Shown one piece after another: positions 19,126-23,201 of a DNA stretch of 64,000 nt. This DNA is from Schizochytrium sp. TIO01. Taxonomy: Eukaryota; Protista; Bigyra: Labyrinthulomycetes. Below the pieces are notes generated by a model, which saw only the letters and a program-made list of their open reading frames with translations, was not told the DNA's origin and searched no databases. A program made the position numbers and the translations under genes. Position 1 is the stretch's first letter; each line of letters opens with the position of its first letter. The DNA lies in assembly GCA_004764695.1 (NCBI GenBank), contig SMSO01000033.1, positions 1 to 64,000 of the forward strand, given 5' to 3'.

Positions 19126-22100
19126 TTATTTCAATATATAAGGGCCTAGACACCCCAATGTTGCACGAAAGGCAACGTTTGCAGCTTCCAGCAAATCAAG
19201 CTCTACTTTCTGCGCAGCAATATAGTCCTCTTTTGAACTCAGCATACCAGACCTGTTCGCAAGCCGACCTTGGGCAATAAGACTATGCTGCACTGAAAAC
19301 GGCAGAGAAAGTGCATCGTTTACAACATGTATACAACGAAGCTCACAAGATATCTGTATAAGACTTGTCCTTCTTGTCTTTGCAGAACAAATTTGCTCAT
19401 TCAATTCGAGCTCCTCACACATTTCATCCGTGAACTGGTCCATCCTAGAAATCAGTAAAAACCAAATAACATCAACTCCGTTCGTTAGCTAACAATTTCA
19501 CGTCATCAAAAGGCACCCACAGTACTGCCGGTACAGTTTCATTTAATCTTTGATGTTATCATGCTCTCTGTTAGATCCACACTCAACCAAACAAACAATT
19601 CCACAACAAACTTGCAATGGCGCGAAGAAAAACATCGGCAAAACAGCACACTAGACAACCCACCACGCAACCAACCAACCAAGTCTCATGCACAAACAAG
19701 TCCACGAGCTACTGCTTAGACAACTTACGATAGTGATGTCAGCGACCGGTTCTCTTTCAGCGCCGCACCCACTGCCTTGGCGCCCTCGTCGTTGATATCG
19801 TTGCCATAAAGACTGTTGATTGATTCAATGATGGCAAGCAATACATTACACGTTACATATTACAATAGATGCACGCATGCATGCATGGACGTGAGTGATC
19901 TAGGTTGGCTCTCAGCATTTATCTTTGTTGTGTTGTCATTTTGCTCTTTGTTCGATGGATGTATACTCACTCAAACAGACAACACATCCATCCATCAAAC
20001 AAACAAGCGATTGCATAAACTTGCAAAACAACACCGACCCACCCACCAAACAACAAATCAAGCATCATGTACAAACAAGTCCACGAGCTGCGGTGTTGCG
20101 TAGACAACTTACTATAGCGTTGTCAGCGACCGGTTCTCTTTCAGCGCCGCAGCCACCGCCTTGGCGCCCTCGTCGCCGATATTGTTGTCAGAAAGACTGT
20201 CGATTTGATTGAAGGATGGCAAGCAATACATTACACGTTACATATTACAATAGATGCACGCATGCATGCATGGACGTGAGTGATCTAGGTTAGCTTTCAG
20301 CATTTATCTTTGTTGTGTTGTCATTTTGCTCTTTGTTCGATGGATGTATACTCACTCAAACAGACAACTCATCCATCCATCAAACAAACAAGCGATTGCA
20401 TAAACTTGCAGAACAACACCGACCCACCCACCAAACAACAAACCAAGCATCATGTAGAAACAAGTCCACGAGCTGCGCTGTTGCGTAGACAACTTACTAT
20501 AGTGATGTCAGCGACCGGTTCTCTTTCAGCGCCGCACCCACTGCCTTGGCGCCCTCGTCGCCGATATCGTTGCCCGAAAGACTGTCGATTTGATTGAAGG
20601 ATGGCAAGCAATACATTACACGTTGCATATTACAATAGATGCACACATACATGCGTGGACGTGAGTGATCTAGGTTGACTTTCAGCATTTATCTTTGTTG
20701 TGTTGTCATTTTGCTCTTTGTTCGATGGATGTATACTCACTCAAACAGACAACGTGTCCATCCATCAAACAAACAAGCGATTGCATAAACTTGCAAAGCA
20801 ACACCGACCCACCCACCAAACAACAAACTAAGCATCATGTACAAACAAGTCCACGAGCTGCGGTGTTGCGTAGACAACTTACTCAAGTGATGTCAGCGAC
20901 CGGTTCTCTTTCAGCGCCGCAGCCACCGCCTTGGCGCCCTCGTCGCTGATATTGTTCGCAGGAAGACTGTCGATTTGATTGAAGGATGGCAAGCAATACA
21001 TTACACGTTGCATATTACAATAGATGCACGCATGCATGCATGGACGTGAGTGATCTAGGTTAGCTTTCAGCATTTATCTTTGTTGTGTTGTCATTTTGCT
21101 CTTTGTTCGATGGATGTATACTCACTCAAACAGACAACTCATTCATCCATCAAACAAACAAGCGATTGCATAAACTTGCAAAACAACACCGACCCACCCA
21201 CCAAACAACAAACCAAGCATCATGTACAAACAAGTCCACGAGCTGCGGTGTTGCGTAGACAACTTACTATAGCGTTGTCAGCGACCGGTTCTCTTTCAGC
21301 GCCGCAGCCACTGCCTTGGCGCCCTCTGAGCCGATCTGGTTGCGTTCAAGACTGTCGATTTGATTGAATGATGGCAAGCAATACATTACATGTTACATAT
21401 TACAATAGATGCACGCATGCATGCATGGACGTGAGTGATCTAGGTTGACATTCAGCATTTATCTTTGTTGTGTTGTCATTTTGCTCTTTGTTCGATGGAT
21501 GTATACTCACTCAAACAGACAACCCATCCATCCATCAAACAAACAAGAGATTGCATAAACTTGCAAAACAACACCGACCCACCCACCAAACAACAAACCA
21601 AGCATCATGTACAAACAAGTCCACGAGCTGCGGTGTTGCGTAGACAACTTACTTGAGTGATGTCAGCGACCGGTTCTCTTTCAGCGCCGCAGCCACTGCC
21701 TTGGCGCCCTCGTCGCCGATATTGTTGTCAGAAAGACTGTCGATTTAATTGAAGGATGGCAAGCAATACATTACACGTTGCATATTACAATAGATGCAAT
21801 AGATGCAATAGATGCATGCATGCATGCATGGACGTGAGTGATCTAGGTTGGCTTTCAGGATTTCATCTTTGTTGTGTTGTCATTTTGCTCTTTGTTCGAT
21901 GGATGTAGACTCAGTCAAACAGACAACCCATCCATCCATCAAACAAACAAGCGATTGCATAAACTTGCAAAACAACACCGACCCACCCACCAAACAACAA
22001 ACCAAGCATCATGTACAAACAAGTCCACGAGCTGCGCTGTTGCGTAGACAACTTACGATAGTGATGTCAGCGACCGGTTCTCTTTCAGCGCCGCACCCAC

Positions 22101-23201
22101 TGCCTTGACGCCCTCTGAGCCGATCTTGTTAAAATCAAGACTGTCGATTTGATTGAATGATGGCAAGCAATACATTACACGTTGCATATTACAATAGATG
22201 CAATAGATGCAATAGATGCATGCATGCATGCATGCATGGACGTGAGTGATCTAGGTTGGCTTTCAGGATTTATCTTTGTTGTGTTGTCATTATGCTCTTT
22301 GTTCGATGGATATATACTCACTCAAACAGACAACTCATCCATCCATCAAACAAACAAGAGATTGCATAAACTTGCAAAACAACACCGACCCACCCACCAA
22401 ACAACAAACCAAGCATCATGTACAAACAAGTCCACGAGCTGCGGTGTTGCGTAGACAACTTACTATAGTGATGTGAGCGACCGGTTCTCTTTCAGCGCCG
22501 CAGCCAATGCCTTGGCGCCATCTTCGCCGATATTGGTGTATCTAAGACTGTCGATTTGATTGAATGATGGCAAGCAATACGTTACACATGATACATTACA
22601 TTAGATACACGCATGCATGCATAGACGTGAGTGATCTAGGTTGGCTTTCAGGATTTCACCTTTGTTGTGTTGTCATTTTGCTCTTTGTTCGATGGATGTA
22701 TACTCACTCAAAAAGATAACTTATCCATCCATCAAACAAACAAGCGATTGCATAAACTTGCAAAACAACACCAACCCACCCACCAAACAACAAACCAAGC
22801 ATCATGTACAAACAAGTTCACGAGCTGCGATGTTGCGTAGACAACTTACTTGAGTGATGTCAGCGACCGGTTCTCTTTCAGCGCCGCAGCCACTGCCTTG
22901 GCGCCCTCGTCGCCGATATCGTTGCCTCCAAGACTGTCGATTTGATTGAATGATGGCAAGCAATACATTACACGTTACATATTACAATAGATGCACGCAT
23001 GCATGCATGGACGTGAGTGATCTAGGTTGGCTCTCAGCATTTATCTTTGTTGTGTTGTCATTTTGCTCTTTGTTCGATGGATGCATACTCACTCAAACAG
23101 ATAACTTATCCATTCATCCATCCATATATCCATCAAACAAACAAACAAACCAGCCATTGCACAAACTTGCAAAACAATAACAACAAAAGGAACACCGTGC
23201 A

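Follow-up and report, generated by a model that had tools for sequence, protein, structure and literature searches.

Gene A and its neighbors in the window

The window analyzed here is a 64,000-nucleotide stretch of the Schizochytrium sp. TIO01 genome (contig SMSO01000033.1, positions 1 to 64,000), in which a sequence with a 385-bp period is repeated 8.9 times at 19658-23118, with an 18S gene ending at 14645 and a 5S gene at 23840-23958. These repeats lie within gene A, a predicted minus-strand gene of 379 codons (19126-23374) consisting of a start exon, nine 84-nt phase-1 LRR exons and a last exon encoding a helical domain of ~105 residues. Exon 1 (23310-23374), read from the sequence and homologous to the first exon of gene B described below, comprises the ATG at 23374-23372, 21 codons in all plus two nucleotides of the first split codon, and is followed by a donor GT at 23309-23308. 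Intron 1 (22934-23309) shares homology with the repeat intron in its 3' part and contains an (AAGC)n microsatellite at 23202-23297. The LRR exons, all 84 nt with AG..GT flanks and phase 1-1, are located at 22850-22933 (A1), 22464-22547 (A2), 22057-22140 (A3), 21653-21736 (A4), 21268-21351 (A5), 20883-20966 (A6), 20498-20581 (A7), 20113-20196 (A8) and 19729-19812 (A9). A2 is the most divergent, with the ladder Asn replaced by Thr, and A8 is a mosaic with the 5' part of A4 and the 3' end of A5. Eight near-identical repeat introns (300-323 nt each, GTAAGT...ACAG) alternate with these exons over 19813-22849. The last, non-repeat intron (19445-19728, 284 nt) leads to the last exon (19126-19444), an open reading frame (ORF) in which one nucleotide finishes the split codon and 105 codons encode the C-terminal helical domain, with the stop codon at 19126-19128.

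Each 84-nt exon corresponds to one 28-residue ribonuclease-inhibitor (RI)-type LRR, a class with repeats of 28-29 residues in which an amphipathic helix comes after an LxxLxLxxNxL strand segment, and an intron of ~301 nt completes the 385-bp unit. Queried singly, LRR exons matched Pfam LRR_6 (PF13516) and solved RI-like, NOD2, NLRP and RanGAP LRR chains. The Pfam matches included A1 (E = 5.6e-5), A5 and A8 (E = 1.5e-5; 25.1 bits, above the gathering score of 23.4), and A8 also matched RI-like LRR chains in the PDB with E-values down to 1e-13 (best, 1.1e-13). The structure was modelled on a natural relative, P0092, which has LRRs and the same C-terminal domain, rather than on gene A itself. The AlphaFold model of P0092 (pLDDT 75) predicts alternating strands and helices followed by two long helices in the C-terminal domain, and Foldseek matched this model to the LRRs of NOD2, NLRP1, RI and tropomodulin with E ~1e-5.

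The last exon of gene A has 98 matches in the genome, 94 of them stop-free, and the only relatives found by a HMMER search of the whole library were five, the source-named ones being MMETSP transcriptomes. This 105-residue end exon gave no match in Pfam and no usable match in the ESM Atlas, and gene A thus does not combine Roc and COR in one protein as ROCO genes do. The paralogous gene B (39393-46030, minus strand) does so. It consists of a start exon (45966-46030), nine exons of the 385-bp-family unit (42432-45620), a tenth, divergent LRR exon (42036-42119) and a terminal exon (39393-41931), in which Pfam detects Roc (2.8e-18), COR-A (1.2e-11) and TIR_2 (5e-13). A genome search with this Roc-COR-TIR ORF found no match at 14.6-19.1 kb, near gene A. 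On the plus strand, a second, independent unit family ("Group 5") with a 425-bp period and the same 84-nt phase-1 design occupies 25446-28935 and runs into a kinase ORF at 29842-32565 (Pkinase match). The C-terminal partners of the arrays therefore differ: a helical domain in gene A, Roc-COR-TIR in gene B, and a kinase.

Several lines of evidence indicate that the arrays are coding and spliced. The AG..GT flanks are retained in 146 of 147 exons sampled across the genome, and the same number are phase 1-1; there is no stop in 147 × 27 exon codons. Three runs presumed to be RNA (here called RNA-like), consulted as short contigs, cover the exon bins 10-100 times more deeply than the intron bins. 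Contig pieces from runs X1 and X4 stop exactly at 23310, the end of exon 1. In addition, joints in the RNA-like runs coincide with predicted donor sites and are missing from the DNA run. The joint 19443|19728, which has plus-strand ends CT..AC (minus-strand GT..AG), is present in the RNA-like run X2 and absent from the DNA run X20; connecting A9 to the last exon, it is the one gene-A-specific item of splicing support. A transcriptome ORF, P0096, fuses the LRR exon of a paralogue to the last exon. Non-coding satellite DNA with an accidental exon-like pattern is contradicted by these open frames, splicing joints, LRR homologies and the transcriptome ORF, and can be given practically no weight. 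Long joints of the "skips" or "goes back" type were considered as exon skipping in gene A and set aside as unassignable, since the exon ends are identical between units; alternative splicing is not claimed. Every junction splits a codon as NN|T, so that units can be duplicated, lost or exchanged with the frame intact.

Similar arrays are known from Aurantiochytrium limacinum as LORE-TEARS, of which Group 0 comprises ~9 units of ~385 bp from the telomere-proximal 18S to the nearest 5S gene, and Group 5 comprises ~421-bp units beyond the 5S gene (bioRxiv 10.1101/2023.06.15.545109). The window resembles them in unit size, copy number and position, and both have a TTAGG telomere of ~500 bp and rDNA transcribed toward the telomere. 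In that description, LORE-TEARS are spacers that match nothing in databases and may help to maintain chromosome ends (bioRxiv 10.1101/2023.06.15.545109). The description of Group 0 as lacking similarity does not hold here: the units encode LRR_6 repeats and are spliced.

Distribution of diversity within the unit

The first-pass annotation of this DNA had claimed that the exons vary more than the introns, mainly at ligand-facing LRR positions, and the measurements confirm this. The nucleotide diversity of the eight complete units of gene A was 0.133 in the exon and 0.045 in the intron, and the values for a genome sample of 127 units were 0.136 and 0.055. The excess is concentrated in 15 hypervariable nucleotides, namely codons 2, 3, 5 and 8 and the split codon (28), with a diversity of 0.529 in gene A, as opposed to 0.047 in the 69 framework nucleotides (0.574 vs 0.041 in the genome sample). 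The 13 most variable of the 385 unit positions are all exonic (127 units; hypergeometric P = 1.2e-9), and 146 exons carry 133 distinct 15-nt signatures. The nine strand segments that the annotation had listed (D-LGGND, N-LRYTN, Y-LDFNK, S-LSDNN, N-LERNQ, Y-LPANN, D-LSGND, Y-LSDNN and Y-LYGND) are present exactly, as are the first variable codons GGA, AGA, GAT, TCT, GAA, CCT, TCG, TCT and TAT. Its statement that the rest of the exon is nearly invariant, even at silent sites, also agrees with the data (framework, 0.041-0.047; framework third codon positions in the 127-unit sample, 0.036). The proposal that the changes are non-synonymous does not hold strictly as an exclusive rule, since the synonymous third base of Leu27 (exon nt 82) is hypervariable as well (0.66), and is fully linked to the split codon. 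Synonymous diversity is also elevated at codon 2 (0.46). The raised synonymous diversity at these two codons fits old linked alleles, and a local mutation bias would fit equally well.

The contrast recurs in the 425-bp family (exon 0.199, hypervariable nucleotides 0.569, intron 0.048). In two other tandem arrays of the same subtelomere (1818-5288 and 6501-8131), the diversity is evenly spread, without hot spots.

The variable sites correspond to LRR motif positions 5, 7, 8, 10 and 13. Mapped by motif onto the secondary structure of the P0092 model, they are predicted to lie in the strand, just after the strand and at the helix N-cap, with none in the helix body, in line with the ligand-facing placement that had been proposed. 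The same positions are variable in the Hondaea homologues. As a raw count, aliphatic residues and Phe make up 14 of 584 residues at the hypervariable codons; a test of this depletion against the base-frequency expectation was dropped as circular, since observed equaled expected. The Nei-Gojobori values for the hypervariable codons (pN 0.555, pS 0.421; ratios of only 1.3-1.6) are saturated and path-dependent, and are therefore not counted as proof of positive selection. The framework has a dN/dS of ~1 (0.044 vs 0.045), so many framework differences may be recent mutations that have not been purged, or some copies may be idle. The case for selection rests on three observations: diversity at the hypervariable sites is 10-fold higher than in intron and framework, stops are absent, and the hypervariable codons are decoupled from their flanks.

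These figures bear on the view that introns and framework are constrained as DNA, for example as a chromosome-end spacer of the kind proposed for LORE-TEARS, and that the five codons are just the only sites left free to vary, saturated by neutral change. Such a constraint would fit the fixed place of the arrays in nearly every subtelomere and the framework dN/dS of ~1, but it would have to act on essentially all ~370 nt. The neutral divergence of the same genes, judged from their unique intron, is 10-34% and not saturated. Moreover, the four whole hypervariable codons, supposedly free, contain no stops against 37.5 expected from base frequencies and few aliphatic or Phe residues (14/584), internal arrays away from the subtelomeres and the ROCO-TIR gene contain the 385-bp unit too, and the non-coding arrays of the same subtelomere diverge evenly. 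We therefore consider this view quite improbable.

A homogenized unit pool and its decoupled codons

At least 393 copies of the 385-bp unit are present across the genome, most of them close to chromosome ends, and each sampled array is confined to one strand. Internal, non-subtelomeric arrays and a ROCO-TIR gene are also built from this unit. Comparing repeat introns from different arrays and chromosomes gives a mean identity of 94.4%, with values of 99.7-100% being frequent. In the same genes, the last intron, which is single-copy, reaches only 66-90% identity, the last exon 85-94%, and the last-exon protein 37-90%. Intron distances are 0.050 within arrays and 0.056 between arrays. Among these paralogues, the repeats thus resemble each other more closely than the unique flanking parts do, which shows concerted evolution, the background assumed in the first-pass annotation. 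A reading of the introns as introners (mobile introns) was rejected, since the exon framework and the intron are homogenized together.

The hypervariable codons do not follow their flanks. Unit pairs with less than 0.5% intron divergence still differ at 52% of the hypervariable nucleotides, identical signatures also occur with flanks 8% apart, and the two distances are uncorrelated (Spearman 0.03). Linkage between these codons fades within ~20 nt, and their association weakens the farther apart they lie in the DNA: z is 13.8 when they are adjacent, 4.7 at a spacing of ~6 nt, 2.5 at ~9 nt and ~0 at 57 nt. It is also ~0 across the intron, although the residues there adjoin on one protein strand. 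The positionally homologous comparison, made with one array pair (C10 and C35), gave differences of 0.74% in the intron, 0.72% in the framework and 8.3% at the hypervariable sites, the last consisting of three clustered swaps (GAC/TCA twice and one of 4 nt) to alleles common elsewhere. Two other array pairs, C27 with C13 and C30 with C5, also look like duplicates. A 14-fold ratio of hypervariable to non-hypervariable differences among pairs with similar signatures was discarded, as it was biased by the choice of pairs. Most amino-acid states at the hypervariable codons are encoded by a single codon each; codon 8 has two states, GAC (74) and TCA (63), and no synonymous variants. The whole-codon swaps and the single codon per state point to copying between units rather than to a dedicated mutator. 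Accordingly, the templated diversification suggested earlier holds in its ordinary evolutionary sense, as whole-codon swaps between existing alleles, and does not extend to a special mutating machinery.

The same data allow two further explanations to be weighed. One is that the unit was recently duplicated in a burst, both in tandem and to dispersed sites, and that very rapid positive selection then acted on point mutations in the binding codons, without ongoing conversion. This would account for the tandem twins that do occur (two C6 units are the same over 370 nt and one hypervariable base apart) and for the equally low framework, intron and synonymous diversity (0.04-0.055). However, the genes bearing the arrays are old, as their last introns and last-exon proteins indicate, and the independence of hypervariable and intron distances, the 3-4-nt swaps to existing alleles between close relatives, and the use of one codon per amino acid, which speaks against repeated new mutation, make a burst unlikely.

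A dedicated diversifier, acting in the germ line or somatically through retroelement-like mutagenic copying, deaminase-type hypermutation or VLR-like cassette assembly, would be suggested by the razor-sharp boundaries of diversity, the simultaneous change of several bases, and the raised synonymous diversity at codon 2 and Leu27. Against it, all four bases occur at all three codon positions with no adenine-only pattern, the neighboring AAC ladder codon is invariant, and codon 8 has two states with no synonymous variants. The same alleles recur on different chromosomes, exon words including the variable codons are found in runs from 13 studies, implying a stable germ-line sequence, and the germ-line gene is already complete and spliced. 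A dedicated mutator is thus not indicated and appears highly unlikely; a diversity-generating retroelement in particular was rejected on the base pattern at codons 2 and 8 (all positions, all bases) next to an invariant AAC.

Taken together, the results support the first-pass interpretation of diversifying selection or templated diversification against concerted evolution. We place the probability at about 0.7 that the 385-bp array encodes the LRR body of a subtelomeric gene that is expressed and spliced, and that its unit is homogenized by ectopic conversion and unequal crossing-over, with selection maintaining and reshuffling a library of codons for the binding face. In this mechanism, unequal crossing-over and ectopic gene conversion keep the unit pool ~95% identical, and the five codons escape homogenization and hold a library of alternatives, which selection for a diverse, open-reading binding surface would preserve. 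Exon nt 5-16, 23-25 and 82-84 would form three modules that short conversion patches shift from unit to unit independently of one another. The outcome would be many LRR proteins with a common scaffold and differing concave faces. A variable, immune-like recognition repertoire is a plausible candidate role.

Relation to known systems and significance

PRDM9 zinc-finger minisatellites, also with an 84-bp unit, undergo concerted evolution with variable contact residues, and the WD40, ANK and TPR repeats of fungal NLRs reportedly evolve in concert with diversity limited to a few ligand-contact residues. The units described here are similarly homogenized, with 15 of the 84 exon nucleotides, at predicted contact residues, differing from the remainder in diversity (0.574 vs 0.041). 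In PRDM9 and the fungal NLRs the repeats lie inside one exon, whereas here each unit has its own intron, which provides a neutral comparator within the unit; an additional layer could come from splicing. In lamprey VLR assembly and in chicken Ig conversion, short donor patches are copied into a constant scaffold; both processes are somatic, with a dedicated deaminase and an incomplete germ-line gene. Unlike in those systems, the germ-line gene here is complete and spliced, and nothing in the public-run contigs consulted indicates somatic action.

The closest comparison among stramenopiles is with the LRR-ROCO genes of the brown algae Ectocarpus and Saccharina, in which each exon likewise encodes a single LRR in symmetric phase, exons are shuffled both inside a locus and from one locus to another, and the variable sites lie on the concave face; these genes too are candidate immune receptors, and they have the ROCO partner in common with gene B (PMC3341825, PMC11378527). 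They differ in having a 72-nt phase-2 exon encoding a 23-24-residue LRR, instead of the 84-nt phase-1 exon and 28-residue RI-type LRR (PMC3341825, PMC11378527). Relic or reverse-strand LRR exons within introns, a brown-algal trait, were not found in a scan of both strands of the window, where the matches are on the coding strand and evenly spaced. The near-identical introns throughout the genome, the subtelomeric site beside the rDNA and the TIR, helical-domain and kinase partners also distinguish the present genes, and the brown-algal papers do not discuss intron homogenization or gene conversion (PMC3341825, PMC11378527). The LRR genes of Tetrahymena, whose ~50,000 exons are each exactly 90 bp long and in phase 2 and which have a retrotransposon association, are alike in their fixed-length single-repeat exons, symmetric phase, kinase fusions and proposed ectopic recombination or conversion; the parts of their description consulted mention no homogenized introns or contrasting hypervariable codons (PMC6564038). 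Such a receptor-diversifying design is known from brown algae, ciliates, fungi and PRDM9, but is not known from this protist group.

Our findings add labyrinthulomycetes to the groups with a one-LRR-per-exon design; their LRR class, exon size and phase differ from those of brown algae and ciliates, which argues that the design was invented repeatedly. The intron within each unit is an internal neutral yardstick that separates the histories of binding-face codons and scaffold unusually cleanly, so that the system lends itself well to measurements of conversion tract length and of the selection acting on repeat proteins. In at least two classes of LORE-TEARS, the units appear to make up the repeat region of a large LRR gene family that is expressed; essentially every chromosome end would then carry a variable receptor-like repertoire. 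A bolder proposal, which we regard as rather unlikely, is that the chromosome ends generate diversity in the germ line, possibly with variation between clones: ectopic micro-conversion among ~50 subtelomeric LRR arrays, promoted by the recombination that homogenizes the neighboring rDNA, would keep recombining the three codon modules of each repeat. If so, the LRR repertoires of lineages would differ on short time scales, and the organism would offer a unicellular analogue of receptor diversification by gene conversion, perhaps tied to resident mirusvirus-like elements.

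A leucine-rich repeat gene between the 18S and 5S rRNA genes

Telomere repeat (CCTAA/TTAGG) makes up the first ~500 bp of the window, and a 385-bp tandem array of 8.9 copies (19658-23118) is placed between the 18S and 5S genes. This array belongs to gene A, a minus-strand leucine-rich repeat (LRR) gene consisting of a start exon (23310-23374, ATG at 23374), nine 84-nt LRR exons with AG and GTAAGT on either side of each, a 284-nt last intron (19445-19728) and a last exon (19126-19444) that adds 105 further residues. Each LRR exon contains 27 whole codons and parts of two split codons, and thus encodes one 28-residue leucine-rich repeat. 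The codon is split as two bases plus T at every internal junction, and the conceptual product has 379 residues.

The 5S rRNA gene (23840-23958, plus strand) lies ~466 nt upstream of the gene A start codon in divergent orientation, and a 61-nt piece at 36058-36118 is 98% identical to its start. An (AAGC)n microsatellite occurs at corresponding sites in the first intron of gene A (23202-23297) and of its paralogue, gene B (45869-45932). There is also a 200-nt inverted match (92%) between 18078-18276, downstream of gene A, and 47890-48088, upstream of gene B. Two gene A introns measure 320-323 nt, not 301 nt, because the 9-nt unit CAATAGATG is triplicated there (21788-21816 and 22192-22220).

The units are coding and spliced, with the open frame kept throughout. 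AG..GT was kept in 146 of the 147 sampled exons and no stop codon was found in any of them; base frequencies predict 37.5 stops in the four whole hypervariable codons, and 0 were observed. When the gene A exons were used one at a time in protein searches, a single 27-residue exon matched Pfam LRR_6, with one exon above the gathering score, and this exon also matched solved ribonuclease-inhibitor-like, NOD2, NLRP and RanGAP repeats (best E 1.1e-13). In three RNA-like runs, exon-containing bins were 10-100 times deeper than intron bins and contigs carried exon-exon joints exactly at the predicted donor sites, none of which was present in the DNA run. Because these contigs are short and the runs are only presumed to be RNA, what they establish is splicing of the family at the predicted sites. 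The support specific to gene A is a single joint connecting 19443 with 19728 (GT..AG on the minus strand), which links the ninth LRR exon, A9, to the last exon. Relatives of the last exon in protein databases include MMETSP transcriptome ORFs, among them P0096, which reads straight through from the end of a repeat intron into a paralogue's LRR exon and the last exon, providing independent support for an expressed LRR gene. That the array is a non-coding satellite is very improbable in view of the splice joints, the LRR matches and the missing stops. The gene A array is a real, expressed LRR gene.

Hypervariable codons in a homogenised scaffold

The first-pass annotation had claimed that exons vary more than introns in gene A. 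The strand segments and first variable codons that it quoted are all present as written, and the claim was borne out: in the eight complete units, nucleotide diversity was 0.133 in exons and 0.045 in introns, with 0.529 in the 15 hypervariable exon nucleotides (codons 2, 3, 5 and 8 and the split codon) and 0.047 in the 69-nt framework. Across 127 units from 13 contigs, the corresponding values were 0.136, 0.055, 0.574 and 0.041 (0.036 at framework third codon positions), and the most variable of the 385 aligned positions were exonic in 13 of 13 cases (P = 1.2e-9). Alternatively, the scaffold may be constrained as DNA and the variable codons neutral, an account that we consider improbable. Codons 2, 3 and 5 encode 15, 14 and 12 different amino acids, respectively, codon 8 has essentially two states (GAC, Asp, n=74; TCA, Ser, n=63), and the split codon encodes Ser, Asp, Asn, Tyr or Val. 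The third base of the Leu codon preceding the split codon is hypervariable though synonymous. As a control, the telomere-proximal arrays of the same subtelomere showed neither a hot spot nor a long open frame: diversity was even in the 370-bp array (1818-5288, mean 0.19, published Group 2) and in the 413-bp array (6501-8131, mean 0.12, published Group 1).

Scaffold and intron are homogenised genome-wide, and five codons escape this homogenisation. Repeat introns of different arrays have a mean identity of 94.4%, and many pairs from different contigs are 99.7-100% identical, versus 66-90% for the single-copy last intron in four family members (85-94% for the last exon), which establishes the previously suggested background of concerted evolution. 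The intron distance within an array (0.050) is close to that between arrays (0.056), indicating that the units act as one genome-wide pool.

In the LxxLxLxxNxI motif, the variable positions are 5 (split codon), 7 and 8 (codons 2 and 3) and 10 (codon 5), as well as 13 (codon 8). To place them, we used P0092, a natural relative with five LRRs and the C-terminal domain of gene A, whose structure was modelled from a small alignment (pLDDT 75). In the model, strand and helix alternate and are followed by two long helices, the C-terminal domain, and the Foldseek matches of the repeat region were NOD2, NLRP1, ribonuclease inhibitor and tropomodulin. Motif alignment to the model put position 5 in the strand between two core leucines, position 7 at the end of the strand, positions 8 and 10 in the loop around the ladder asparagine and position 13 at the helix cap, with no variable position in the helix body or descending loop. 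In standard LRR geometry, such positions make up the concave sheet and ascending rim, the ligand-contacting part in ribonuclease inhibitor complexes. This indirect mapping, by secondary structure on a relative, agrees with the earlier proposal that the variable sites lie mainly at ligand-facing LRR positions. P0003 and P0005, LRR-ROCO-TIR proteins of Hondaea fermentalgiana, have near-identical repeat scaffolds with the same motif positions variable; judging from these sequences, the design would be older than the split of these thraustochytrid genera or would have arisen in both.

Probable copying and reshuffling of the variable codons

The history of the variable codons is separate from that of their flanks. 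Hypervariable distance was independent of intron distance (Spearman 0.03); in 40 unit pairs with intron divergence <0.5%, 52% of the hypervariable bases differed, compared with 57% in all pairs, and some units have identical 15-nt signatures, yet flanks 8% apart. The association between variable sites drops as DNA distance grows: it was strongest between the Leu27 third base and the split codon (z = 40), followed by codons 2 and 3 (z = 13.8), codon 3 (or codon 2) and codon 5 (z = 4.7), codons 5 and 8 (z = 2.5), and codon 8 and the split codon, 57 nt apart (z = 0.9). No association (z = 0.2) was seen between the split codon and codon 2 of the exon that follows, whose residues lie side by side in a single beta strand. 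The pattern is explained by DNA linkage, not protein contact. Exon nt 5-16, 23-25 and 82-84 form three modules that combine freely over ~20 nt, with 133 signatures in 146 exons. Exon A8 (20113-20196, minus strand) is a visible recombination product within one gene, a mosaic whose first 38 nt, variable codons included, equal those of A4 and whose last 11 nt equal those of A5, with a silent G at nt 39 common to A6.

Homologous arrays differ by multi-base allele swaps. The arrays on contigs C10 and C35 are positional homologues with eight units in the same order, and their alignment of 3377 positions contains 34 differences: 0.74% in intron and flank, 0.72% in the framework and 8.3% at hypervariable bases. 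The hypervariable differences comprise three clustered events, two replacements of GAC by TCA and a change of 4 nt (Ser-Tyr to Tyr-Gly), and all three swaps yield alleles common elsewhere; 3-nt module swaps likewise distinguish other otherwise similar units. Most amino-acid states at the variable codons use one codon only (codon 2: Glu GAA 17/17, Gln CAA 12/12, Tyr TAT 10/10; codon 5: Asp GAT 32/32, Asn AAT 27/27), and codon 8 has no synonymous variants at all. Such usage is expected if the codons are copied and identical by descent, and not if a local mutator were at work. We consider a dedicated diversifier improbable.

Point mutation also supplies the codon library, since twin units on contig C6, otherwise identical, differ by a single base (Pro to Ala), although such cases are few. 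Recent amplification with selection on point mutations is unlikely, if the least so of the alternatives. Synonymous diversity in same-residue pairs was 0.106 at variable codons and 0.036 in the framework, the former driven by codon 2 (0.46), and reached 0.66 at Leu27. Our interpretation is that old allelic lineages have carried their nearest silent sites along; alternatively, the raised diversity may reflect local mutation bias.

Taken together, we assign a probability of roughly 0.7 to a reading in which, on homogenised units, selection for a diverse binding face would maintain a codon library, short-tract ectopic conversion would reshuffle it, perhaps assisted by the location near chromosome ends and by ~300 nt of perfectly homologous sequence per side, and the LRR proteins would serve as a variable recognition repertoire.

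The unit family and known chromosome-end repeats

In the 64-Mb genome to which the window belongs (37 contigs), a search found at least 393 copies of the unit, with 92-98% identity that extends through the introns. The copies are spread over some 20 contigs, and many are 20-80 kb or less from a contig end. The last exon had 98 genome matches (37-90% protein identity, 94 open), which sit directly downstream of arrays. Its ~105-aa domain (19126-19444, minus strand) had no match in Pfam or the ESM Atlas, and five relatives among 1.84 billion representatives. Genes with different C-terminal parts draw on the same unit: this helical domain in gene A and many others, and Roc, COR-A and a C-terminal TIR in gene B (39393-41931, minus strand). 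The gene B Roc-COR-TIR part has ~15 close paralogues in the genome (69-91% identity, three with an internal stop), and the best named relatives of its ORF are from the thraustochytrid Hondaea fermentalgiana (44-45% identity). An independent unit family, the 425-bp array at 25446-28935, varies at the same motif positions as the 385-bp units (exon diversity 0.199, hypervariable 0.569, intron 0.048) and is followed by a 907-aa ORF (29842-32565, plus strand) with a protein kinase domain and a cysteine-rich C-terminal part.

PRDM9 and, reportedly, fungal NLRs have homogenised repeats whose contact codons are hypervariable. One-LRR-per-exon arrays with 72-nt phase-2 exons, shuffling and concave-face selection are known from brown-algal ROCO genes (PMC3341825, PMC11378527), and such arrays with 90-nt exons are described for Tetrahymena (PMC6564038). 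The window's units are set apart from these known systems by the class of their LRR, by the length and phase of the exon, and by their near-clonal introns, rDNA-adjacent chromosome-end position and TIR, kinase or helical-domain partners. We found no paper on LRR receptors in thraustochytrids in the literature searched.

In Aurantiochytrium limacinum, LORE-TEARS Group 0 comprises ~9 units of ~385 bp from the telomere-proximal 18S to the nearest 5S, and Group 5 has ~421-bp units; these repeats were called spacers without GenBank similarity, with a possible role in chromosome-end maintenance (bioRxiv 10.1101/2023.06.15.545109). No further paper with the term LORE-TEARS turned up in the literature searched. 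The window matches those chromosome ends, as described, in telomere repeat and length, rDNA/5S orientation and spacing, and repeat classes. Size, copy number and position of the gene A array agree with Group 0, and the 425-bp array fits Group 5. Groups 2 and 1 look non-coding, unlike Groups 0 and 5, where the published 'spacer' is here re-read as genes.
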